From: Mobula hypostoma
Lineage: Eukaryota
Length of the DNA: 64,000 bases
Direction of reading: 5' to 3'
Assembly: GCF_963921235.1 (NCBI RefSeq)
Contig: NC_086097.1
Coordinates: 31,496,001 to 31,560,000 of the forward strand
Shown: positions 1 through 58,607 of the stretch, piece by piece
Layout of the letters: every line of letters begins with the position of its first letter
How positions within the stretch are numbered: the first letter of the stretch is position 1
Translations under genes and position numbers: made by a program
The notes under the pieces: model-generated
Told to the model about the DNA's origin: nothing
Databases searched by the model: none
The model's input: the letters and a program-made list of their open reading frames with translations, nothing else

Positions 1-299
1 GTGTGAACACTCTACGAAATGCACTGCAGCTAATCAAGCAGATCACCCTGACACCACATTCCAAACCAGTGACCACTACCCACCAGGCAGGACAAGAGCT
101 CATGCCTGGGAACACCACCACCTGAACGGTTCTCTCAGTGTCCTAAATTGGAAATATATTGGTGTTTCTTCATCATCACTGAGTCAATATCCTAGAACTC
201 CTTGCCCAATCATGCCTGTATGCCAGTGACAATTCAATAAGGTGTCTCAACCTTAACTTGTCAAAAGCAGTTATGAAGAGTCAATGTGCTGCACTCTAC

Positions 300-1600
300 A
301 CTGGGAGAGAGGTTAAAAATGCCTGTAAACACAGCTGCCGGCTGTGCCGTGCACACTCTGTACCCACCCTGCGATGCCATCTTGTCCCGTAGCCTTGCGA
401 CTGTCCACTCGTTGGAAACACTTGCTTACTTCGGCCTCAGCGGCTCTCCTCAGGGGCTCAGTATTGGCAACATCAAATCGAGAGTGAAAAATATTTAGCT
501 CATCTGGGGGAGAAGCAGCAATGTTGGAAACTCCACTGCGTTTAGCTTTGAAGTCTGCGATAGTGTGCAGACCTTGCCACAAGCTGCGAGTGCTGTTGAT
601 GGAGAGCTGTGTCTGAATCTTGTCCTGGTATTGTTGTTTTGCTGCCCTGATGACTTTGCACAGACCGTAGCTGCACTTCTTGAGTTCCTACTGGTCACTG
701 GCAACGTAAGCTCTGTGTTGCACAGTAAGTGCTGCTCGCACAGAACTGTTGATCCAGGGTTTCTGGTTTGGATAGACCCTGAGTGATTTCTGGGCGACAA
801 CGTCCTCATCATGGAAAACATTCCGTCGACATCATCAAGGCAGTCCTGTAGCATGGAGGCCCACTGGTCAGACCAACAGTGGATGGCTTTAACTCTGGCG
901 GCCTCTTGTTTCAGCTTCTGCCTGTACTTCAGCAAAAGCAGGATGGAGGAGTGATCAGATTTTCCAAATGTTCGGCGAAGGAGCGCTTTGTTAGCGTTGC
1001 AGAAGGGACAGTAGCGGTGATCTAGTATGCTATATCCCCGTGTGCTCACATGGATATGTTGACAAAACTCCAGAGAAACTTTTGTCAATGTGCTCTATTA
1101 AAATCACTGGCAATGATGAAGGCAGACCCCGGTTGTGCAGTCTCCAGTGTGCTGATGGTCTTCTACAGTTGCTTGACAGCCAGGTCAGTATCAGCCTATG
1201 GCAGAATATACACAGCTGTGATAATAATAGCTGTGAACTCCCTAAGCAACCAGAAAGGTCTACACAGCACCACAAGGTACTCCAGATCCAGGGAAAAAAA
1301 GGATTTGAGGGCATGCAAGTTCTGGGGGCCACACCAAGCACTGTTGACCATGAAGCATACCCCATCTCCTTTACTCTTCCCAGAGAGGCTTTTTTGATCT
1401 GTCCGCCCAGTACAGGGAGAACCCAGAGGGCTCGATGGCATGATCCAGTATCTCATCCGTCAGCCAGGTCTCCACCAAGCACAAAATGTCACACTTCTTT
1501 GTTTCCCACTGGTAGGAAATTCTGGCTCTTAGTTCGCACAGCTTATTGTCCAGGGATTGAACGTTAGCCAGGAGTGTGCTAGCAGTTGCGGCTGATTAGT
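300..1600 (-). mobile_element. Decayed Rex1/Babar-like non-LTR retrotransposon ORF2 fragment (AP endonuclease and linker)
   Basis: Frameshifted minus-strand ORFs carry RPFWLLREFTAIIITAVYILP, TRGYSILDH, FGKSDHSSILLL and RKATGQDGI, which are typical endonuclease and pre-RT motifs of this clade. Confidence 0.75.
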
Positions 1601-13305: not shown

Positions 13306-15204
13306 TCATGCCCTCTTGGTGTGGCTGGTGAGCTGGTGGGTGCTCAGGTCCTTCTTGAGCTTGAAGCGGTCACCACACTGCGGGCAGGTATGCATGTGCA
13401 GTTGCATGTGGCGCTCCAGCATGCGGCCATCGGCCTGCACCTGGAAGCAGACTTCGCAGAGGGCCTGCCCAGCGACCAGGTGCGAGGCCAGGTGCCGCAG
13501 GTGCTCCTGCTTGCGGTAACTGCCCTGGCCGCAGCACGGGCACACGTAGCGGGCCTCGCCCCTGTGCATGTCCAGGTGCAGCCGCAGCAGCCGCTCGCGC
13601 AGGAAGCTCTTGCCGCAGAGCGGGCAGGTAAACTCGCGCTCCCGGGTGTGCGTGGCCTGGTGTTCTCGCAGGTGGCAGCGCTGGTAGAAGCCCCGGCCGC
13701 ACAGCTGGCAGACATGCCGGCGGCGGGGCGACGACCCCCCCTCTGGCCCGGGCGGGCTCGGCCCGCATCGCGCCATGTGCTCGGCCCACGGCCGCTCCTC
13801 CTCGAAGGCTAGCGGACAGTGAGGGCAGCGGTAGGTGGCATCAGGGGTCACCCCCACCGTCTCCTCGGCCACCTGATGCTCCTGCATGTGTTCCTCCAGC
13901 TGCCACGAGGCGGGGAAGGCCTGCCCGCACACTGGGCAGGCGCAGGCCTCCTCCGGCGGCTGTTCCAGGCCCAGGCCCTGCTCGCCGGTACCCAGGCATC
14001 GCTCGGCGTGCTCCTGCAGGCGGCCGCCTTTCACCAGGACGCGGCCGCACTTGCCGCAGGCGCACACGCTCTCCCGGTGGTGGGCCACATAGTGCTCAGC
14101 CCGCTCACTCTCGGGCAGCGCCACGCCGCACAGCTCACAGGCCGGGCCCAGCGGGCTGCCACCTGCCCCCGCTCCCTCGTCCTCCTCCTTTAGGCCTCCG
14201 TCCTCCTCCTCGTCCTCCTCCTCCTCATCCGTCCAGCTTCCCGGGTCCCGCTCTGGAGGGGGCGGCTGGCCGAAGTGGCTGTAAGGTGGTGACAAGTCTT
14301 CCTCCAAGCCGGGAGTCAGCTCGCCCTCAGCCGCCACTTGCACAACCGTCAGATCACCAAGGTTGGTGGCCGCTGTGTCCTCGGGCTCTGTTTTGACCTC
14401 AGGCCGTGTGCAGTCTGCCTCTCCCTCGCCTCCTCCTTCCCCGGCTGTTGCCATGGTGTCCAGGGTGAGCGTCCCCCTGCCGCGGGCCGGCGGCGGATCC
14501 CCGGGCTGGGGCAGGGCCCGGCGGCTGTCACAGGTCAGCGAGTGCTCGTCCAGCAGCCGCTCGCAGCTGAAGACAAAACCACAGCGGTCGCAGGTGTAGC
14601 GGCGGCCAAACCGCCGGTGCAGCCGGCCCCCTTTCAGCCCATTGCCCCGGCTCGGCTTGCGGCTGGGCCTGTCGGGGCTGGCGTCGGCCACCGCCGCTGC
14701 CTCTCTCATCCCGTTCAGCTCCGAATCACCAGCCTGATCTTTGGGCCCGGCCCTGGGCACCTTGCCATCACCCGGCAGCAGGCCGTGCATTCGGACGCCG
14801 AACAGCATGGAGCCTCTAGGCGGGCCGAAGGGCGGGGAGGGGGCACTGTCCTCCCGCACCTCCTCCAGACTCCGGGGGACGTAGTAGAGCTGCAGGAAGG
14901 TCATGGCCGAGCGAAGCTCTTCGAAGTCAGAGGGGACGCCGACCAGCCGGCCCAGGTACATGAGTTGCAGAATGAGGTCGAAGCACTCGGCGGTGACGGG
15001 AGCCTGACTCAGGCTGAGGTCGCCCGTCAGCTGCTGCTGACCGATGAACAGCATGCGGAAGTAGGAGCTGCAGGCCGTCAGCACGGCGCGGTGGGCGCGG
15101 AAGTAGATGTCGCCGATGATGATGCAGCAGTCGCAGAGGAAGCCCCACTCCCGCTGGTTGTTCAGCTGCTGAAGGACGTATTCGCTGTGGCTGGGCCGCG
15201 CCAT
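13306..15204 (-). CDS. ZBTB1: Zinc finger and BTB domain-containing protein 1 (632 aa, single coding exon)
   Basis: BTB start MARPSHSEYVLQQLNNQREWGFLCDCC, UBZ-like CPHC..EHMARC, and C-terminal fingers CGRGFYQRCHLREH and CGKSFLRERLLRLH all match ZBTB1. Acceptor ctttgcag| at 15253; the exon starts at 15252. Confidence 0.95.
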   Translation of the reverse strand: MARPSHSEYVLQQLNNQREWGFLCDCCIIIGDIYFRAHRAVLTACSSYFRMLFIGQQQLTGDLSLSQAPVTAECFDLILQLMYLGRLVGVPSDFEELRSAMTFLQLYYVPRSLEEVREDSAPSPPFGPPRGSMLFGVRMHGLLPGDGKVPRAGPKDQAGDSELNGMREAAAVADASPDRPSRKPSRGNGLKGGRLHRRFGRRYTCDRCGFVFSCERLLDEHSLTCDSRRALPQPGDPPPARGRGTLTLDTMATAGEGGGEGEADCTRPEVKTEPEDTAATNLGDLTVVQVAAEGELTPGLEEDLSPPYSHFGQPPPPERDPGSWTDEEEEDEEEDGGLKEEDEGAGAGGSPLGPACELCGVALPESERAEHYVAHHRESVCACGKCGRVLVKGGRLQEHAERCLGTGEQGLGLEQPPEEACACPVCGQAFPASWQLEEHMQEHQVAEETVGVTPDATYRCPHCPLAFEEERPWAEHMARCGPSPPGPEGGSSPRRRHVCQLCGRGFYQRCHLREHQATHTREREFTCPLCGKSFLRERLLRLHLDMHRGEARYVCPCCGQGSYRKQEHLRHLASHLVAGQALCEVCFQVQADGRMLERHMQLHMHTCPQCGDRFKLKKDLSTHQLTSHTKRA

Positions 15205-15409
15205 CCTCGGGACGTGTCCCCCCCACGACCCGCCTCCTCCCGCCAGGGCTTCCTGCAAAGAGCAAAAGCTCAGCGTCAGCTCGAGAGGTATTTTATTTCA
15301 ACATCAGACTTCTTTGACACAGCTACATTGAAACGTACAGTGAAATACGTCATTGTGCACCCACAACTAACACAGCGGTCCGAGGATGTGCTGCAGCCAG
15401 CCCGCTGTT

Positions 15410-48825: not shown

Positions 48826-49551
48826 TGGCCTGATTCTACTCCTATGTCTTATGGTCTTATGAACAATGTTGAGCCACACACAGTAAGTAGTTTGCTATGT
48901 TGTTGTTCTGAGATGTGAACCTCCTGGAGGGCTTTTCTCACTGGAGTGAAGAAGGATGAGAGGTGACTTGACAGAGGTATACAAGATGATAAGAGGCTTA
49001 GATTGAGTGGACAGCCAGAGACTTTTTCCCCAAGGGTGGAAATGGCTAATTCGAAGGGCATAATTTTAAGGTGATTGGAGAAAAGTATAGATGGAGGTAA
49101 GTGTTTTTTTTACACAGAGTGATGAGTGTGTGGAATGCCCTGCCAGGTGTGTAGTAGAGGGGCATTGAACAAATTCTTAGTAGACACATGGATAATAGGA
49201 AATGGAGGGCAACATTGTGGGCTGAAGGGCCTGTACTGTGCTGTAATGGTCTATGAGCCCATTTTGTTGTTTGGGCAAACATAGAACATTACAAGTTCTT
49301 GATATTTATTGCTTAGTTATTATTATTACTTTTATTTTGTATTTGCAAGTTGTTGTCTTTGTGTGTTCTTCCATTGATTCTGCTATGGTTATTGGATTTA
49401 TCGAGTCTGTCTGCAAGAAAATAAATCTCAGGGTTGTATATGGTGACATATATGTACTTTGATAATAAGTTTACCTTGAATTTGAACTTTCAAAGGGCGG
49501 TACCAAATGTTAATTGTGCAGCTTTATTCTCTGCAGGGCTGGGGCGACGTT

Positions 49552-49724
49552 ATGGACGTGGCGAATCACAGTGTGGTCCTGCTGCAGCAGCTGAATGTCC
49601 AGCGGGAGTTTGGCTTCCTGTGTGACTGTACGGTGGCCGTAGGGGACATTCACTTCAAAGCCCATCGAGCTGTGCTGGCTGCATTCTCCAACTACTTCAA
49701 GATGATCTTCATTCATCAGTCCAG
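49552..49724 (+). CDS. ZBTB25: ZBTB25 coding exon 1 (BTB N-terminal half, 173 nt)
   Basis: [57 protein letters not shown]. Acceptor at 49536; donor CAG|GTAAGG, phase 2. Confidence 0.95.
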
Positions 49725-51197
49725 GTAAGGGGGCATTCTTAGCCTGCCTCCTGCAGCTTGTTCAGACTCCTGCTCGTTCACGGGTCTCCTCCACCCTTCC
49801 CCTCATAGTACAGAAACAGACCCTGTGGGTTCATCCTACCATCATGCACACATTCACACTGCCACCACACAGAACAGGCTGGAAGAGCGCAGCATAAACA
49901 AACGACACTTTGGGCTGACACCTTTCATCAGGACTGGAAGGGAAGAGGACAGGAGCCAGGATAAGAAGGTGGGGTGAGTACGAGCTGGCAGGTCTTGGGT
50001 GAGACCAGGTGAGGGGGGAGGTGGGTGTAGTAAAAAGCTGGGAGGGGTAGATGGACAAGGTAAAGGGCAGGAGAAGGAGGAACCTGATAGAGGAGAGTGG
50101 ACCACGGGAAAAGGGGAAAGAGGAGGGAGGTTGTAGGCATGAGAGGAGGGGTAAGAGGAGTACCGGAATGGAAAAACTAGGAGTGGGTAGAGAAATTACT
50201 GGAAGTTAGGGAAATAAGAGTTCATGCTGTCGGGTTGGAGGCTACCCAAATGGAAAATGACCATTTTTTTTCTCCCCGCATTCTAATCATCTTCCCCCTA
50301 GATTCTATCCACCCACACTCTGGGGGCAATTCACAGCAGCCGTTTGGGATCAGCATCACAGCTCGATGGGCTTTGAAGTGAATGGCTCCTAGGGCCACAT
50401 CAGCCCTTTGGGATGTAGGAGGAAACAGCAGAACTCGAGGTCAGAGGGAGAACATACACTCTCCAAACAGAGCACCAGAGGTCACTGAACCAGGGCATCA
50501 CTGTGGCAGCTGCACTCCCCCTTTAAACATTTCCCCTCACACCTTAAACCTGTGCCCTCTGGTATTTGACACTTTTACCCGGCGATAAAAGACACTGTCT
50601 GTTCTATCTATACCTTGCATCATTTTATAAGCCTCTGTCTAGTCTCCCCCTCAGTCTCTACCACTCCAGAGAAAACAACCCGAGTTTTTCCATCCTCTCC
50701 TCTCCTCACGGCTCAGGCCCTCAGTGTCACTCCTCCAAATGTGGCCTATCCAAAGTTTTATAAATTGCACAATGACCTTCTGACTTTTATAGTCCTTGCC
50801 TGTAGCAATAAGAAAAGATGTCATATGCCTTCTTTATCACTCTATCTATTCGTGGGTACTTTCAGGGAATCATGCTTCCCTGTTTCTCTTTTCACAGTTG
50901 CTGACTGACCTGGTGAGTTCTTCCAGCACTTTTTGCTTTCATTTTTCCTTTCCTGTCGTATTAACCAGAGTTATGGGTTTGGGTCTCTTGTTGTCAGGAT
51001 CAGCTGCCAGTGCTGGAATCCTGTGCCTGAGACGGGTCTGCTGGGGGAATGCGTGTGCCAGGAGTTTCATGTTTTTTTGAAAATGCTGCTCACATGTTTT
51101 GATCTCTCTCCCCCTTCCCTACTCTTCCATCTCCCCCACCCCCCCGGCTCTCACTCCTTCACACCTTCTTTCTCCCTCCATCCCCTCTCCCTGACAG

Positions 51198-52009
51198 CGA
51201 CTACATCAAAGTGCAGCCAATGGACATCCAGCCAGACATCTTCAGCTATTTACTACACCTCATGTACACGGGCAAGGGTCCGAAGCAGCCAGTAGACCCC
51301 AACCGGCTGGAGGAGGGCATCCGATTCCTGCATGCCTACAACTTGGTCCATGACCCGAGCCAAGGGGGACAGGCGTTCACCCAGCACCCCGAGGTGCCGT
51401 CCCTTCAGTCGCCCAACCTCTACGGCATCCAGATCTCGGGCTCACAGAAGCTACCAGTGCCCCCTGGAGGCCAGAGCGGGGTCACCACCCTGAGCGCGGA
51501 GCAGACTGGTCAGACGACCCTGGGAGTGGCCAACATCCCGGAGCACCGGTACGCCCGTCCTCCCATCGGCCAGGAGATGGGAGCAGAGGAGAGCGGCCAG
51601 AGCCTCCCCTCATCATCTGCAGCAGCGTCCAGGGGTCTGCAGGTCCCCGGTCTCAACTTTAAGCGGAGCAAGACCCACAAGCTCTACTCCTGCCACTACT
51701 GTGGGGAGCGGTTCTCTGCCAGGGGCAGCCTGCGGGATCACCTGTACTCGCACGCCAGTAGTGCCGTGCCTGCTGGAGCCCCCACCGAGAGCAGGGCCCT
51801 GGGGGAGGAGGCCGAGGGAGTCGGAGGTTCCCTGTCCCAGGGAGATGAGGCCCTCCCTTCCACCCCTGATCAGCAGGAGGGAAGCGGACTGGACGAACAG
51901 CCTCCCGTCGGTCTGACTGTGACCATTGGAGCCTGCGGGGACGCCGTCGACCCAGGCAGCGGCTTCACCACGGCCAAGAGGAGGAGGTTCACCTGCAGTG
52001 TGTGCGGCC
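51198..52009 (+). CDS. ZBTB25: ZBTB25 coding exon 2 (rest of BTB, linker, C2H2 finger 1, half of finger 2)
   Basis: Acceptor ctgacag|, phase 2. Encodes DYIKVQPMDIQPDIFSYLLHLMYTGKGPKQ..LEEGIRFLHA..NLYGIQIS..CHYCGERF..LRDHLYSH..KRRRFTCSVCG. Donor C|GTGAGT at 52010. Without splicing the frame stops at 52038 (337-aa product). Confidence 0.92.
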
Positions 52010-53089
52010 GTGAGTATCCAGGGCTCCCAGGGGCGTGAGTTGGCAAGGAACTGAGGACCAGGGCCGTCAAGGTGTTAAACCTACTGGCTGAAGTTCCAAC
52101 CCCAACCAGTTCATTTCCAAACTCTAAACACAAGAGATTCAGCAGATGCTGGAGATCTTGAGCAACACACACAAAATGCTGGAGGAACTCAGCGGCGTCT
52201 AAGCGAGGGAGGGGGAAAAACAGTCAATGTTTCAGACCAAGACCCCTCAACAGGACTGGTTCAGAGGGGGGCGGGATCCAGAATAAGAAAGTGAGAAAAG
52301 GGGAAGGAGGCAATGACTTCTTCAACTTCTGGTAAATTCTCCCCCTCCCTCCTCTCTTTTCTATCTCCCTTTTGGTTACCCTGTCTCCTTCATTTCTCCT
52401 GGCTTGTCCGTCATCCCCCTCAAGTTCCCCCTCTTCCTTCCTCTTACAGAGCATTATAACACAGAAATTAATTAGACCTTTGTCCCATCTAGTCCGTACC
52501 AAATTACTAACCTGCCTGTACCCGGACCATAGCGCTCCACGTTTCCCATCCATGTATCTGTTCCAATTTCTCTTACATGTTGAAATTGAACCCGCATCCA
52601 CCACTTCCACTGGCAGCTCGTTCCACACTGTCACCACCATCAGAGTGAAAAGTTCCCCTTAAACATTTCATCTTCCACCCTTTATCCATGACCTCTAATT
52701 CTAGTCTCACGTAACCTCAGTGGAAAAAGCCTGTTTGTATCTCCTCCTTATCATTATGTGCTGTGTTGTATGACGTGGGCGATCATAGTCCCATGATCAT
52801 AATTGTTCTTGGCAAGTTTTCCTACAGAAGTGGTTTGCCATTGTCTTCTTCTGGGCAGTGTCTTTACAAGATGGGTGACCGCTGTCAATATCAATACTCA
52901 GAGATTTTCAGTGGCTGCATAACTAGGTCTTGTGATATGCACCACCTGCTCATATGACCTTCCACCACTTGTTCCCATGGCTTCACATGACCCTAATTGG
53001 GGAACTAACGGTGACCTACCGGCTAGCAGAGAGAAGGAGTACTTTCCACCTTCCTTGGTAGAGACATATCTCCACCTTGCCATCTGTGC

Positions 53090-54300
53090 TTGTATTTACT
53101 CTATCTATGCCTCATAATTTTGTAAACCTCTATCAAATCTCCTCATTATCCTACGCTCCAGAGAATAAAGTCCGAACCTATTCAGCCCTTCCCTATAACT
53201 CAGGTCCTCAAGTCCTGATAACCTCCTTCTAAGTTTTCTCTGTACTCTTTGTCTTATTGATATCTTTCTTGTAGGTAGGTGACCAGAACTGTACACAATA
53301 CTCCAAAGTAGGCTTCAACAACATCTGGTACAAGTTCAAACTAATATTCCAATTCCTGTATTCAATAGTTTGATTTATGAAAGATAAAGTGCGAAAAGAT
53401 CTCTTTACAACCCTAACTACCTGTGATGCCACTTTCAAACAGTTATGTATCTGTATTACCAGTTCCCTCTGTTTTACCACACTCCTTAGTGCCCCACACT
53501 TGTAAAATCTACACTTGTTTGTCCTCCCAAAGTCCAACCCTCACACTTATCAGTATTAAATTTCATCTGCCATTTTTCTAGCTGCAAGCTTTAATAGTCT
53601 TCCTTGTTGTCCACTACATCCCCAATCTTGGTATCATCTGAAAACTTGCTGATTCAGTTTACAACATTATCATCCAGATTGTTTATATTGATGACAAACA
53701 ACAGCCTCAGCAGTACACCACTAGACACAGGCCTCCAGTCAGAGAGCAAACATCAGCTAACACTCTCTGGCTTCTCCCGAAGCCAATGTCTAATCCAGTT
53801 TATTACCTCATCTTGACTGCCAAGTGACTGACTCTTTTTGACCAACCTCCCATGTGGCACTTTGTCAAAGGCCTTGCTAAAGTCCATCTAGATAACATCC
53901 ACTGCCTTGCTTTCATCAGCTTTCCTGGTAACTTTCTTGAAAAACTCCAAAAGACTTGTTAGACCCGAGCTGCCATGCACAAAGCCACGTTAACTACCCT
54001 TATTCAATCCATGTCTATTCAAATACCTAAATACTGGTTCGCTTAGAGTATCTTCCACTAATTTACCTATTACTGATGTTAGAGGCTCACCAGCTTATAA
54101 CTGCCTATCTTTCTTAGAGCCTTTCTTAAATAATAGAACAACATTAGCTATCCTCCAATCCTCTGCGGCTGAGGACATTTTAAATATCTCTGCTAGGGGC
54201 CCTGCAATTTCTGCACCAGCCTCCAACAAGGTTTGAGGGATATACGTTGTCAAGCCCAAGGGATTTATCCACCCTAATTTGTCTCAAAACATCAAACACC
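53090..54300 (-). mobile_element. CR1-like LINE fragment (intronic)
   Basis: LKPTLEYCVQFWSP, plus a decayed MDFSKAFDKVPH region at ~53850-53890. Confidence 0.8.
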
Positions 54301-54724
54301 TCCAGCTTGCAGTGCTACACCTGCCCATTCACCTCCTTCATACCAGGCCCCAAACAGTCCTTTCAGGTGAGGCAACACTTCACCTACAAATCTGCTGGGG
54401 TTGTCTCTTGTATCCGGTGATCCTGATGTGGCCTCTTTGACATTGTTGAAATGTTGTAAATTGGGGATATTTCGTCAAGCATCTCCACTCCATCCACCAA
54501 AAGCAAAACTTCCTGATGGCCAAAATTTTAATTCCAATTCCCATTCTTGTTCTGACATGTCAGTCCATGGGCCCCCTCTTGTGCCTGACTTGCTGTGTTC
54601 CTCTAGCATTTTGTGTGTGTTACCTCCTCTGTAATCTGCATACGGTACATAACCTACTGTTTTGCTTCACTTCTATATACTCTGTCCATCCCTCGAGCAA
54701 GTACAGCGTAGGAGGGATAATATC

Positions 54725-54910
54725 ACTGATTGGGTGGAAGGGTTTGAGGAAAATGCCTTTGATTGGGCGGAAGGGTTTGAGGAAAATGTCTTTGATTGGG
54801 TGTAAGGGTTTGGGGAGAATGTCTCTCACTGGGCAGAAGGGTTTGGGGAGAATGTCTGATTGGGCGGAAGTGCTGGTGAAGGATGTCTCTGATTGGAGAG
54901 GTTTGGGGTA
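54725..54910. repeat. 33-bp minisatellite, 6 units, most containing ATTGG and some GGAAG
   Basis: Unit gattgggYggaagggtttgRggaRaatgYcttt starts at 54728, 54761, 54794, 54827, 54858 and 54891. Confidence 0.9.
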
Positions 54911-55313
54911 ATGGCGTCTCAGATTACCATGGGGATAACTATTCAGTCCTATAATATAATTTGCTTCCATGCTTTTGTAGCTCCTGCCTGATGGGAGAAG
55001 GGAGAAGTGAGAATGACTGGGGTGGATGGGATATTTGATTACGCTGGCTGCTTTACGGAGGCAGGGAGAAGTGTAGAAAGAGTCCCTCCACTCAATGTGA
55101 CCATTCCCTGATGGGGCTCAACCCCATTTCCCTACAATAATTAAACACGGCTGAGGACAGACCAGTGTGGCCTGATTGTTCAACCCACCTCCCCACACTT
55201 CCTCTCTCCCCCTACCATCTTGCACCACACCCCTTCCCTTCTCTGCCCACAAGTCCCCTCTCTCCCCCACTGTCCCCATAAAGCACCCACCCTGATGCCT
55301 CTCTCTCTCCTAG

Positions 55314-57778
55314 ACTCTGCAGACCCTGAGCCCAGCAGCACACCTCCACCTACAGCAGCACCACCTGGAGCCCTGGAGGAGTCACCAGCTGTCGCCCAGC
55401 CCCAGCCCCAGCCCCAGCCCCAGCCCCGGCAGGAGGATTCAGGCCCGAGTGGGAGCCCCGATTCCACCGTTGACCTCGAGAGTGCCTTCCGCGATGTCTT
55501 CGCCAACTATGAGGCGGCGCGTGTCCATGCACACTACAAGTGCGCGCGCACTGGCTGTGAGCGGGCGGCTGTGTCCGCTGAGCCGCGGCGTGGAGACCGC
55601 TTTGTGCATAAGTGGCTGTCGGACCGTGAACTGACTTACTGCGAGCGCACCGGTGTTTACTGGTTGCTCTACGAAGAGGGCCAAGGCATGTTCTGCTACC
55701 TGTGCCGGCGTCACGACACCCAGAACAAGCAGAACAAGACCAAGGTGTTTAACGGGACGCCGGCTGTGCGCTACAAGAAGTCGGCACTGCAGGTGCACGC
55801 TGAGTCACAGCAGCATGCCGCTGCTGTGCACGCTGAGTTGGCGGGCCGCATGACTGAGCGAGAGATGGCCGAACGCGAGCGCCAGGAGGGCACCTCGCTG
55901 CGCGCCCTTTTCCTCGCCGCCTATTGGCTGGCGCGCGAGGGACTACCCACCGCAAAGCTACGCCCTACATTGCGCTTGCTTGGTGAGGCAGGGCTAGTGG
56001 GAGGTGCCGCTACGCATTTTCGGCGAGCCGATACACTTCAGGAAGTGTTTCGCGGATTGGGCCGCGCTGTCCGCCAGCGACTCATCAGCCGTATCCGCCG
56101 TGCCCCCGCCTTCGGCATCCGCTGCGAGCGCGCCGGTCCTGGAGCCGAGGCCTCGCTGCTGGCCTTCGCTCAGTTCATCGAGCCTGGCGTTGAGGTGGCC
56201 AGTGGGCTGCTCTTCACCGAGGCCCCAGGCCCTGGCCGGGGCTGGGACTCACCTGATGAGTTGGCAGCAGTGATCAGCCACACCTTGGGCTGCCTGGAGC
56301 TGCCAGTCTCTCGGCTGGCCTCGCTGGTGACGGATGGCGGCGAGGCGATGCCGACGGTTGTGTCGCGGCTGAGGGAACTGAGCCCGGCCTTGCTGGGACT
56401 GCATTGTGTGAGCCGCAGGCTATTGTTAGCTGCCGCCTCGGGCTGTCTGACCTGCCGGCCCCTGCTGCGGGTTGAGGCCTATCTGCAGCAGCTGTGGGAG
56501 GTGCTGGAGCGTTCGCCTGGCCTGGCCGAAGCCTATCTGAGTGCCCGGCTGGCAGGGGCCTCGGCTGCGCAGCCCAGTGGCCGTCTGAAACCGGCACTGC
56601 TGCGCCGGCTGAGACGGGCCTGCCGCCGCCGCCGACTGTCTCTCGAGGCCTCGGTGGAAGGCGCCTACAATGACTATGCGGCGCTGTTGCGGGCCCTGTC
56701 AGCACTGAGTGAGGCTGAGGCAGCAGCTGTTGGCCTACTGGCCCAGTTGGGCAGCCCACGCTTTGCCGGGGCCCTCTATATCCTGCGGGAGGCTTCAGCT
56801 GCGCTCCTGGGCCTGTCGCGGGCCTGGCGCCGGGGTGGCCTCCACCCACCCGCCCTGGAGTCTCTCCTACGACAGGCACTGCAAAGGCTGGAGGAGGTTG
56901 CTTCCTCCCGGGCCGCGCTAACTCGCCTGCGAGTGGATTTGGAGCCCGGCGGCCGCTTGTCCTGCTGTGCGCTGCCGGGGCTGGGCGCTGGGGACGAGGC
57001 TGAGCTGCGTGGCCTGTTGGAGACCTACACTGCCCGGCTGGTGACTGACTTACGCCGCCGCTTTGAAGCGTCTGCTCCGCTGCTAGCCGCCGTCTCCATT
57101 TTTAACCCCCTTTTGGTGCCTGATCCGGGTTCCTCCGGCTTTGCTGCTCATGGACAGGCTGAGGTCGGGGCCTTAGCCGCTCATTTCCACCCCGGAGACC
57201 TGGCTGCCGAGGCCCGGTTGCAGGCTGAGTGGGCTCGACTCAAGCTGGAGCTGCCGGGTTGGAAGTTTGGTGTTGCAGCCTTGTCGCTGGGCGAATCTTC
57301 AGCGACTGAGTGCTGTCTGCGCCACCTCTTGGGCCTCGGCACATACCCGGCCCTGACGCAGTTTGCCGAGGTGGCACTTTCAGCCCCCGTGGCCCCGGCC
57401 CGCTCTGACCGGGCCTTTGCTGCCCTGCGGAGGCTGGAGACGCGACTGCGGGGTGGGCGCTGTGAAGACACCGGCCTGCTTGACAGCCTGCTACAGATCT
57501 CGGTAAACGGACCCGAGCTGGGTACGGCCGACTGCACACAGCTGATCCAGGAGGCGGCCCTCGCCTTCCTACAGCAGAGGTGCCAGGGCACAGTGGTCCC
57601 AGCCCACCAGAAACCCCCGCTGGCATCCTTCAAGACTGAGGAGGCGGCTGAGGCCTGCTGTTCAGAGGGCTCGGAGCAGGAGCTGGAACAGCTGCAGCAG
57701 GAGCTGGATCAGACAGTGGGCGCCCTACAGCTCCAAGCCGACAACGAGAGTGACTCAGAGGACAGCCTCTGCGACTAA
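55314..57778 (+). CDS. Domesticated hAT transposase-derived exon (ZNF862/C17orf113-like: TTF/BED-type zinc finger, RNase H-like body, hAT dimerisation domain); predicted terminal exon of ZBTB25
   Basis: Uninterrupted ~820 codons. W..W..GMFCYLC..H(AESQQ)H finger; hAT-like motifs LVTDGG, LHCVSRRL, SIFNP, PVAPARSDRAF and LLQISVNGP. Branch site ctgAt (55295), pyrimidine tract and tag| acceptor in phase 1. Confidence 0.85.
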
Positions 57779-58487
57779 GCCCTGGGTCTTCCTGCAAACG
57801 CCCAGCCAGAGCTGACGCCAAGGTAGAAGTGCCTGACTCTGGCCATTCCCTTGGGCTGGCCCCTTCTCCTCGCCCATGCCCTTGGGCATGACAACCAAGG
57901 CAGATATGTGAGTTCATGGGAGGGTCACAGAGCTGTCAGGGTTTGGGCATAAGTAGGCAGGTCTGTCCCCATGCTGAATGCTAACAGGGTGGAACTTTAG
58001 AAGTCTGGAAGTCGATGGGGCAGGTTCAGGATTGTCTCAATGTAGACCCCAGAATTTTGGATGCTAAAATCCAGAGCATCACACCAGAATCTAGAGAACC
58101 TTGATGGGTTGGGCAGCATCCATGGAGGGAAATGGACCGTGTGTCTTTGGTCGCAGCTCTTCATCTGGTGAGAAGTGTCATCCATTTCCTTCCCTCAGTG
58201 CTGCCTGACCCACTGGGTCTGTCCAGCATCTTGTGTTGTTGGGAATGTGTTCACCTTCCCGTCAATGGGGCTCTCTTTTTGACCACACCTTTGCTACCGG
58301 CCATTCTCCCTGAGGGCCAGTGTATTGGGGTGGTGTGGCAGGCTGGAAGAGAGATGGTCTTGCTCAGGGTGGAATATAGCTTCCAGCTATTGCAGAATAC
58401 CCAAAACACTTCCACCACAAGTGTGCTTTGAGTAGATTTATTTCTTTTTAACTGCAGTAGTTTTTTCACTTGTATTTTAAAAGTAAA

Positions 58488-58493
58488 AATAAA
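58488..58493 (+). terminator. Probable polyadenylation signal for the transposase-derived terminal exon
   Basis: AATAAA ~710 nt after the stop codon, followed by T-rich sequence. Confidence 0.65.
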
Positions 58494-58607
58494 GATTTTT
58501 TTTAAAAGCAGTTTTTAATCATTTTTTATTACAGCTTTCTGTAGGCAAATTAATGAGCAAGTGAAAAGTTACAGATTGCTGCTTGCTGGTTTCGTGACAC
58601 AGTTCAT

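Follow-up and report, generated by a model that had tools for sequence, protein, structure and literature searches.

We analyzed a 64,000-nucleotide (nt) stretch of the genome of the ray Mobula hypostoma (RefSeq assembly GCF_963921235.1, contig NC_086097.1, forward-strand positions 31,496,001 to 31,560,000), hereafter the window, in which an earlier sequence-only reading had proposed a three-exon gene fusing the BTB/zinc-finger protein ZBTB25 to a hAT transposase. The present analysis indicates, with a probability that we put at about 0.93, that the ZBTB25-hAT fusion gene is real, is expressed, and is ancient. The proposed fusion of transposase and host gene was upheld by contigs that span the splice junction, by a donor, an acceptor, and a phase kept among batoids, by purifying selection on the transposase exon, and by a predicted hAT fold. 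The wider explanation, in which a ZBTB25 orthologue with a domesticated hAT last exon is joined with its proposed history and a role as a regulator, is in our view very likely.

Structure and expression of the gene in the ray window

The three coding exons (Table 1) sum to 173 + 812 + 2465 = 3450 nt, which gives 1149 codons and a TAA stop codon without an internal stop, and our recomputation returned the same structure and protein length (1149 amino acids, aa) as had been predicted. All splice contexts are consensus (GTCCAG/gtaagg, ccctgacag/CGACTA, GCGGCC/gtgagt, and ctctcctag/ACTCTG; slashes mark exon borders). The 57 aa encoded by exon 1 are 100% identical in Hypanus, Amblyraja, and Pristis, and this exon probably begins at an acceptor, ctctgcag/GG, near position 49537, with an exon of the 5' untranslated region (UTR) further upstream. 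Exon 3 is contained in an open frame at 55220-57778. The AATAAA noted earlier at 58488 is present, and one RNA contig stops ~10 nt beyond it.

The ZBTB25 homology does halt inside zinc finger 2 at a phase-1 donor, as had been claimed. Exon 2 terminates at C/GTGAGT, directly after the knuckle KRRRF-CSVCG, which is the first half of the ancestral finger 2. Reading through the donor past 52009 gives CSVCGREYPGLPGA and then a stop, that is, ten codons (REYPGLPGA-stop), and the place taken by these first codons of intron 2 codes, in bony vertebrates, for the rest of finger 2 and a short tail. In the spliced form, the split codon C+AC encodes His, and the junction protein reads ...AKRRRFTCSVCG-H-SADPEP (...RRRFTCSVCG-H-SADPEP). 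The sequence-only reading had compared this His with the CTICGH of human ZBTB25, and mammalian ZBTB25 (P0018) indeed reads CTICGHKF at the homologous place. The three-exon product aligns in one piece across the junction with the full-length proteins of other species, and Pfam finds BTB (exon 1), one C2H2 finger (exon 2), and zf-C17orf113 (exon 3) in it.

An alternative exon that restores finger 2 would have spoken against the fusion. A regular-expression (regex) scan for C2H2 halves, in six frames over the whole window, detected no second half of finger 2 on the + strand and matched only finger 1. No canonical ZBTB25 tail was detected on the + strand of the window by tblastn with nine canonical tails (E-values, E, up to 50), which matched just finger 1 and the - strand fingers of the neighboring gene. 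On the + strand of the window, these searches thus gave no sign of another exon that could bring back finger 2 or the canonical tail, in agreement with the earlier remark that a normal ZBTB25 C-terminus is missing.

To look for the junction in RNA, as the sequence-only reading had proposed, we mapped the contigs of four public runs, which represent three coded organisms, onto positions 51150-57149 of the window; it should be noted that these Logan contigs are assemblies and not single molecules. The 52009 to 55314 joint, which skips 3304 nt with GT..AG borders, was found in all four runs, each time within one contig of 3557-4348 nt. The contig of run X1 (4189 nt, 0-1 mismatches) carries ~182 nt 5' of exon 2 and 1353 nt beyond 57149; from these flank lengths, it would span ~9 nt of the 5' UTR, exons 1-3, and the 3' UTR to ~58502, just past the AATAAA. 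Depth was 0-14 in the repeat-free bins of the intron versus 16-66 in the exons. None of the contigs listed continued from 52009 into the intron, and no short unfused form was seen among the RNA contigs at the window.

In the RNA runs, some parts of intron 2 between positions 52128 and 54700 had contig word depths of thousands to tens of thousands (e.g., 29,685-93,065 at 52150-52349), and many partial joints were found there; their source is copies of highly repeated, transcribed interspersed elements.

The host part was searched, one way, with the first 336 residues of the closest homologue. The best named matches were ZBTB25 proteins of many tetrapods and fishes (~45% identity, E ~1e-80), with ZBTB2 paralogues lower. 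The full BTB domain was matched in the shark orthologue P0004, and the BTB region is nearly identical across vertebrates. The gene also lies head-to-head with an upstream ZBTB1, ~34 kb apart, which is intact and single-exon and has six or more C2H2 fingers at 13321-13938 (- strand); its best clusters in the atlas are 'ZBTB1' (score 0.99, 218/256 features shared). The same head-to-head layout was found at the bowfin locus (L005), where a 707-aa BTB-zinc-finger gene lies upstream of ZBTB25 on the opposite strand. From homology and gene order, the host part is identified as the cartilaginous-fish orthologue of ZBTB25.

Mammalian ZBTB25 had been described as a short BTB protein with two fingers and no transposase, and this description holds (~435 aa, two C2H2 fingers). 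The ray and mammalian proteins have orthologous BTB domains, linker motifs, and a first finger, the CxxCG-H start of finger 2, and ZBTB1 as the neighboring gene. They differ in what follows: as in other tetrapods, the mammalian exon 2 encodes the whole of finger 2 and a tail of 60-70 aa, whereas the ray gene encodes only half of finger 2, followed by a transposase part of 820 aa. The ray protein therefore departs from the two-finger composition of ZBTB25, with finger 1 intact and only CxxCG-H remaining of finger 2.

Table 1. Coordinates of the predicted features (window positions unless otherwise indicated; ORF, open reading frame)
Feature	Position	Strand	Evidence or remark
Coding exon 1 from the ATG, 173 nt; first half of BTB/POZ	49552..49724	+	Pfam BTB, E 1e-13; donor CAG/gtaagg
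Coding exon 2, 812 nt; BTB remainder, linker, C2H2 finger 1, KRRRF-CSVCG knuckle	51198..52009	+	
Intact C2H2 finger 1	51691-51753	+	Regex scan, Pfam
Intron 2, 3304 nt, GT..AG, full of interspersed repeats	52010..55313	+	
Coding exon 3, 2465 nt, 820 codons and stop; domesticated hAT transposase	55314..57778	+	
3' UTR; AATAAA at 58488-58493, likely poly(A) site ~10 nt downstream	57779..58502	+	Sequence, RNA contig end
Disordered Pro/Gln-rich linker	Exon-3 protein 1-47		
Conserved helix and H/C knuckle	Exon-3 protein 49-96		
Zinc finger	Exon-3 protein C127, C130, H161, H167		
RNase H-like core with helical insertion	Exon-3 protein ~265-640		
hAT C-terminal region (an acidic tail follows this range)	Exon-3 protein ~650-760		
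ZBTB1, single long ORF; BTB, UBZ-like match, C2H2 fingers	13309..15258	-	Pfam; synteny context, outside the fusion
Bowfin relic of exon 3, three collinear decayed pieces	L005 13715-13972		tblastn; ~5.7 kb 3' of the ZBTB25 stop

The transposase exon

Exon 3 had been taken for a hAT-type transposase derivative, and several comparisons point the same way. It matched the Pfam zinc finger zf-C17orf113 (PF25431; E 7e-10, 39 bits versus a cut-off of 29.5), and residues C127, C130, H161, and H167 are nearly invariant in alignment A1, made of 54 relatives of the exon. The AlphaFold (AF2) model derived from A1 (predicted local distance difference test, pLDDT, 84.6; predicted template modeling score, pTM, 0.76) has an RNase H-like core split by a large helical insertion, as expected for the hAT fold. 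Its eleven best Foldseek matches in the Protein Data Bank (PDB) were all Hermes chains (E 1e-6 to 1e-4, TM score by target 0.37-0.48). The A1 profile also aligns to the Hermes sequence (E 2.6e-11), with the columns of the second catalytic Asp (D2) and of the catalytic Glu (E) on FVTDrGAN and SERTFS; in the same alignment, the hAT C-terminal block S..ER.FS aligns to Hermes PASSAASERTFS. Among Swiss-Prot proteins, the best fold matches were human ZNF862 (E 8e-21) and C17orf113 (7e-18), and further matches were ZMYM1, KIAA1586, FAM200A/B/C, SCAND3, EPM2AIP1, PRKRIR, ZBED5, and the maize Ac transposase, all at 11-18% identity. NCBIfam gave no match to the window protein, as expected for a eukaryotic protein. 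Based on these fold and profile matches, exon 3 derives from a hAT transposase and has no orthologue among human proteins, and we assign it, from model and profile, to the domesticated hAT transposases of a ZNF862/C17orf113-like group.

Exon 3 resembles Hermes, the active hAT transposase of the housefly (PDB 2BW3, 4D1Q), in its RNase H-like core, large helical insertion, and C-terminal region (Foldseek E 1e-6, probability 1.0) and, by sequence profile, in the D2 and SER.FS blocks. However, identity is only 12-13%, and the ray protein has Glu for the first catalytic Asp (D1), Asp for the catalytic Glu, and Arg for the His of the CxxH motif. Unlike Hermes, the ray exon also occupies a single, fixed orthologous locus, where it is spliced to a host gene, and it is without terminal inverted repeats. 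Only inverted pairs of 12-13 nt, at chance level, were found around it, and thus neither these repeats nor the 8-bp target-site duplication that mark an active transposon. Human ZNF862 and C17orf113, the best structural matches, have the Pfam zinc finger PF25431 in common with exon 3; at 17-18% identity they are not its orthologues, and their host partner is different or absent. ZNF862 is itself a fusion of a KRAB host domain with a hAT transposase. An exhaustive search returned 990 relatives of exon 3. The nearest ones outside the ZBTB25 clade were stand-alone proteins named 'zinc finger protein 862-like' from amphioxus, acorn worm, and a bivalve (28-35% identity), and other near relatives were metagenome or transcriptome proteins.

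Exon 3 is under purifying selection. Pairwise NG86 ratios of nonsynonymous to synonymous substitution rates (dN/dS), calculated over about 800 codons, were 0.12 for the window versus Hypanus, 0.19 versus Pristis, and 0.24 versus Amblyraja, with an overall range of 0.12-0.26, close to that of exon 2 (0.15-0.26). The ratio was 0.02-0.17 in the zinc-finger block and 0.02-0.10 in the last 55 codons. The transposase ORF is intact in 16 species. Neutral drift, which the sequence-only reading had named as a result that would count against it, was not seen.

The GC content at third codon positions (GC3) of exon 3 is 0.72 in the window (55314-57778), 0.87 in Amblyraja (L002 9139-11568), and 0.97 in Pristis (L003 39278-41749). 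The batoid transposase part is rich in Ala, Leu, Arg, and Gly, and the batoid branches in the tree described below are several times longer than the shark branches, which suggests GC-biased evolution at the ZBTB25 locus in rays and skates. A run of CCCCAG hexamers at window positions 55398-55430 encodes (Gln-Pro)n in the disordered linker of exon 3, and its length differs from that in Hypanus sabinus.

Distribution and splicing history

Comparison of the last exon with other fish ZBTB25 loci, proposed earlier as a way to date the capture, revealed the fusion across cartilaginous and lobe-finned fishes and relics of it in bowfin and gar. The full-length architecture (BTB, C2H2, and hAT) is predicted in 13 other cartilaginous fishes, the coelacanth, and a lungfish. 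Rays, sawfish, and skates with the fusion include Hypanus sabinus (94% identical), a Logan ray (P0002), Pristis, Amblyraja, and Rhinoraja, and the sharks include Chiloscyllium, Rhincodon, Heterodontus, Heptranchias, Mustelus, and Pristiophorus. For Scyliorhinus, the model covers just the transposase part, and the chimaera Callorhinchus has a partial model named ZBTB25. The coelacanth and lungfish proteins are annotated as 'ZBTB25 isoform X2' (1196 aa) and 'ZBTB25 isoform X1' (1204 aa), respectively. In a maximum-likelihood tree, 16 transposase exons formed one clade (100/100), with the coelacanth and lungfish on one side and the chimaera and elasmobranchs on the other. The main splits match the species tree, with the exception of Pristiophorus, which groups with the batoids; this is probably a composition artefact, since the amino-acid make-up of these rows is skewed.

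Relics were found in ray-finned fishes. The gar isoform X2 has a short relic of the start of the exon after finger 2 (...CFPQYDGLKRHSHYKC...), and the three bowfin pieces (Table 1) represent the very beginning of the exon, its HYK-C knuckle, and a stretch that lies ~125 residues farther along; the zinc finger is deleted. The bowfin locus ends at 13994, and more of the relic may follow. The transposase exon did not turn up in tetrapods in the searches made, and none was found at the turtle locus within the 1 kb of 3' flank examined. This distribution, the single clade, and the relics argue that the capture predates the split of cartilaginous and bony vertebrates. We place the fusion, from these sequence comparisons, in the common ancestor of sharks and bony fishes, with a later loss toward land vertebrates, and mammalian ZBTB25, with its short form, is best interpreted as what remained once the exon had been lost, and not as the state before the capture.

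The 'ZBTB25-like' model of Narcine bancroftii (P0015, 460 aa) has the CxxCG junction followed by Tyr and not His, then a long Pro/Ala-rich repeat and a non-homologous end. This model probably represents the same fusion gene, either truncated or wrongly predicted.

The sequence-only reading had proposed that a native finger was traded for the transposase. This holds for the cartilaginous fishes but not for the capture itself, as the coelacanth and lungfish fusion proteins retain both fingers; the loss would be a second step. The lungfish models X1 (1204 aa) and X3 (443 aa) are identical over their first 382 aa, to ...LLEHMYSHT, and then diverge into DLSEPESSSS... (the transposase exon) versus GKTYRYN... 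(the short tail). Turtle and bowfin encode the short tail within exon 2, in direct continuation of finger 2. At the place of the internal donor, bowfin reads CAC ACA G/GT AAA (ACAG/GTAAA), which is a good donor, and turtle reads AAAGGGAAA, AAA GGG AAA, without a GT (GGG and not GGT, in the H-K-G-K codons). Splicing out of the Gly codon behind its first base yields G+AC, Asp, which fits the HT-D junction of coelacanth, lungfish, and gar, while the cartilaginous-fish donor yields C+AC, His, with the acceptor and phase as in bony fishes. The internal-donor model for lobe-finned fishes is thus built on protein isoforms together with bowfin and turtle DNA.

The cartilaginous donor, GGCC/gtgagtatcc, is identical in the DNA of Hypanus, Amblyraja, and Pristis (loci L001, L002, and L003), and the acceptor ag/AC and the phase are also kept there. 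This donor lies 48 nt upstream of the ancestral one, and the codons for the rest of finger 2 and for the short tail would therefore now be intronic. On these comparisons, the loss of half of finger 2 appears as a later, derived change common to cartilaginous fishes. An origin of this donor by point mutation of the ancestral His-Lys-Phe codons was considered but found no support: the intron start CGTGAGTATCC, conserved in batoids, matches the turtle sequence CACAAATTTCT at only 5/11 positions.

We propose the following history, which seems likely to us on the sequences compared. A hAT element would have inserted 3' of ZBTB25 before the split between cartilaginous and bony vertebrates, and its ORF would have been reached from an exon 2 donor, CAG/GTAAA, within the H-T-G-K codons just after finger 2, to the phase-1 acceptor ag/AC. 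The outcome would have been a short isoform made by read-through and a long fusion isoform, both still found in the lungfish gene models. Tetrapods and ray-finned fishes would then have lost the transposase exon, with relics in bowfin and gar, and cartilaginous fishes would have kept the fusion only, their donor, 48 nt upstream, having cut finger 2 in half and eliminated the short tail. With somewhat less assurance, we lean toward a reciprocal partitioning of this two-isoform ancestral jawed-vertebrate gene, with the fusion in cartilaginous fishes, the short form in tetrapods and ray-finned fishes, and both in lungfish and coelacanth. Human ZBTB25 would then be the survivor of a lost fusion, and sharks might keep a BTB-tethered nuclease.

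Alternative readings, function, and significance

The apparent fusion could be a short ZBTB25 and a separate downstream hAT-derived gene that are linked only by chimeric contigs, by read-through, or by an annotation or assembly artefact. Transposase-only gene models do exist, in Scyliorhinus (P0007, 821 aa) and lungfish (P0135, 812 aa), and the Logan contigs are assembled. However, the exact GT..AG joint recurs in four runs from three organisms without any listed contig entering the intron from 52009, phase 1 continues without a stop codon, and the donor, acceptor, and phase are kept across rays, skates, and sawfish. Exon 3 also lacks its own start context; it reads open from the acceptor onward, with the first ATG well inside, and an unspliced exon 2 would end in a 10-codon, non-conserved tail. 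We give this alternative hardly any credence. Scarcely better placed is the view that the hAT was captured separately in cartilaginous and lobe-finned fishes, or recently in rays only. Fish genomes commonly contain hAT elements, transposases have been captured repeatedly (bioRxiv 10.1101/2020.05.07.082677), and the donor sites differ between the two groups; yet all exons fall in one clade (100/100) with its main splits as in the species tree, both groups have the same acceptor ag/AC, phase, and first exon residues (S/D-x-x-E-P-E-S-S), relics lie at the same place in bowfin and gar, and there are no terminal inverted repeats.

Some observations weigh against the fusion reading or parts of it. 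The library types are guesses ('RNA?', and 'probably DNA' for one run), and contigs can drop minor isoforms, so an intron-retaining short form may exist. The lungfish, coelacanth, and gar isoforms are automated gene models, known as predictions only, and the tblastn E-values of the bowfin relic pieces are individually weak (4e-5 to 0.004), their weight coming from position and order. Dimer_Tnp_hAT is only sub-threshold in the ray protein (E 0.028, 14.7 bits versus a cut-off of 21.4). The Amblyraja-Pristis comparison gave an outlying dN/dS of 0.44, probably because GC3 values of 0.87 and 0.97, respectively, depress dS. Finally, the role as a transcription factor is drawn from domain content, and catalytic loss is not clade-wide, as sharks and the chimaera keep D1 and sharks also D2, E, and CxxH.

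These residues bear on a further alternative, in which the transposase part is still an enzyme and the protein a BTB-tethered nuclease or recombinase. Sharks have D, D, and E at the three catalytic positions, with CxxH kept in most, after >400 million years; the chimaera has D at D1 and D2 and keeps CxxH in its partial model, in which the catalytic E falls outside the covered part. All of D, D, E, and CxxH are present in the stand-alone relatives from amphioxus, an acorn worm, and a bivalve. Purifying selection acts on the whole RNase H-like core and not on the zinc finger alone. On the other side, the window protein has no intact triad: its motifs are GIRCERAG (D1 replaced by E), TDGGEAM (D2 kept), HCVSRR (CxxH lost), and SDRAF (catalytic E replaced by D), a state found also in close rays. 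Skates have E at D1, E at D2, and E at the catalytic Glu, and coelacanth and lungfish have G, D, and R or K, respectively, with CxxH lost in both groups. Conservation of the core is equally expected for an oligomerisation scaffold. With its E-D-D triad and lost CxxH, the ray protein is unlikely to cut or join DNA, and, given the degradation in rays, skates, and lobe-finned fishes, a function common to the whole clade could not depend on catalysis. We consider an enzymatic role improbable for these reasons.

Exon 3 in the ray is instead most likely, judging from its residues, a DNA-binding and oligomerisation module rather than an enzyme, and a non-catalytic transcription-factor role of the fusion is fairly likely by analogy. 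In this model, which follows other host-transposase fusions (bioRxiv 10.1101/2020.05.07.082677), the protein would be a BTB-domain transcription regulator. The BTB domain would dimerise and recruit partners, and finger 1 would recognize DNA and build higher-order assemblies together with three parts of the transposase, namely its extremely conserved N-terminal zinc finger, its catalytically degenerate RNase H-like core, and its hAT C-terminal region.

Host-transposase fusions born by alternative splicing include SETMAR, KRABINER, and CSB-PGBD3 (Cosby et al., bioRxiv 10.1101/2020.05.07.082677). As in these cases, the ZBTB25 fusion combines a regulatory host module with a transposase ORF on its own exon 3' of the host domains, reached from a host donor and under purifying selection. 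The lungfish gene models suggest that the fusion and parental isoforms may coexist in some lineages. The separate exons joined in the transcript and the purifying selection on the transposase part agree with the definition of fusions used by Cosby et al. The ZBTB25 case differs in its host, which is BTB and C2H2 and not KRAB, SET, or CSB, in its far greater age, as it predates the shark/bony-fish split, and in its reciprocal outcome, with one lineage left with the fusion only and others with the parental form only. The survey of Cosby et al. covers tetrapods only, and its main text is without BTB or ZBTB (bioRxiv 10.1101/2020.05.07.082677). As the ZBTB25 fusion is absent from tetrapods, a tetrapod survey could not have found it. 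The only BTB fusion with a transposable element that is named in a paper on F-box and transposable-element (TE) domains is the BTB/POZ-integrase zinc-binding family (PMC12062965). The ZBTB25 fusion had been regarded as possibly undescribed. This stands insofar as no published description of a ZBTB25-hAT fusion was found in the literature, but the architecture is already present in the gene models of the NCBI pipeline for at least 15 species, under names such as 'uncharacterized protein LOC...', 'zinc finger protein 862-like', and 'ZBTB25 isoform X1/X2'.

New transcription factors are known to arise when transposases are captured by splicing, but such captures have been catalogued only in tetrapods and mostly with KRAB partners. 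The ZBTB25 case would extend this mechanism to a BTB-zinc-finger host and would date one capture to before the shark/bony-fish split, with the same ancestral two-isoform gene resolved oppositely in different vertebrate lineages. The system also lends itself to tests, with models of both forms in lungfish and coelacanth, the fusion only in sharks and rays, and the short form only in mammals; the catalytic residues kept by sharks, and not by rays or lobe-finned fishes, provide a contrast for testing. The human gene would thereby gain a history, in that ZBTB25 would once have borne a transposase exon.

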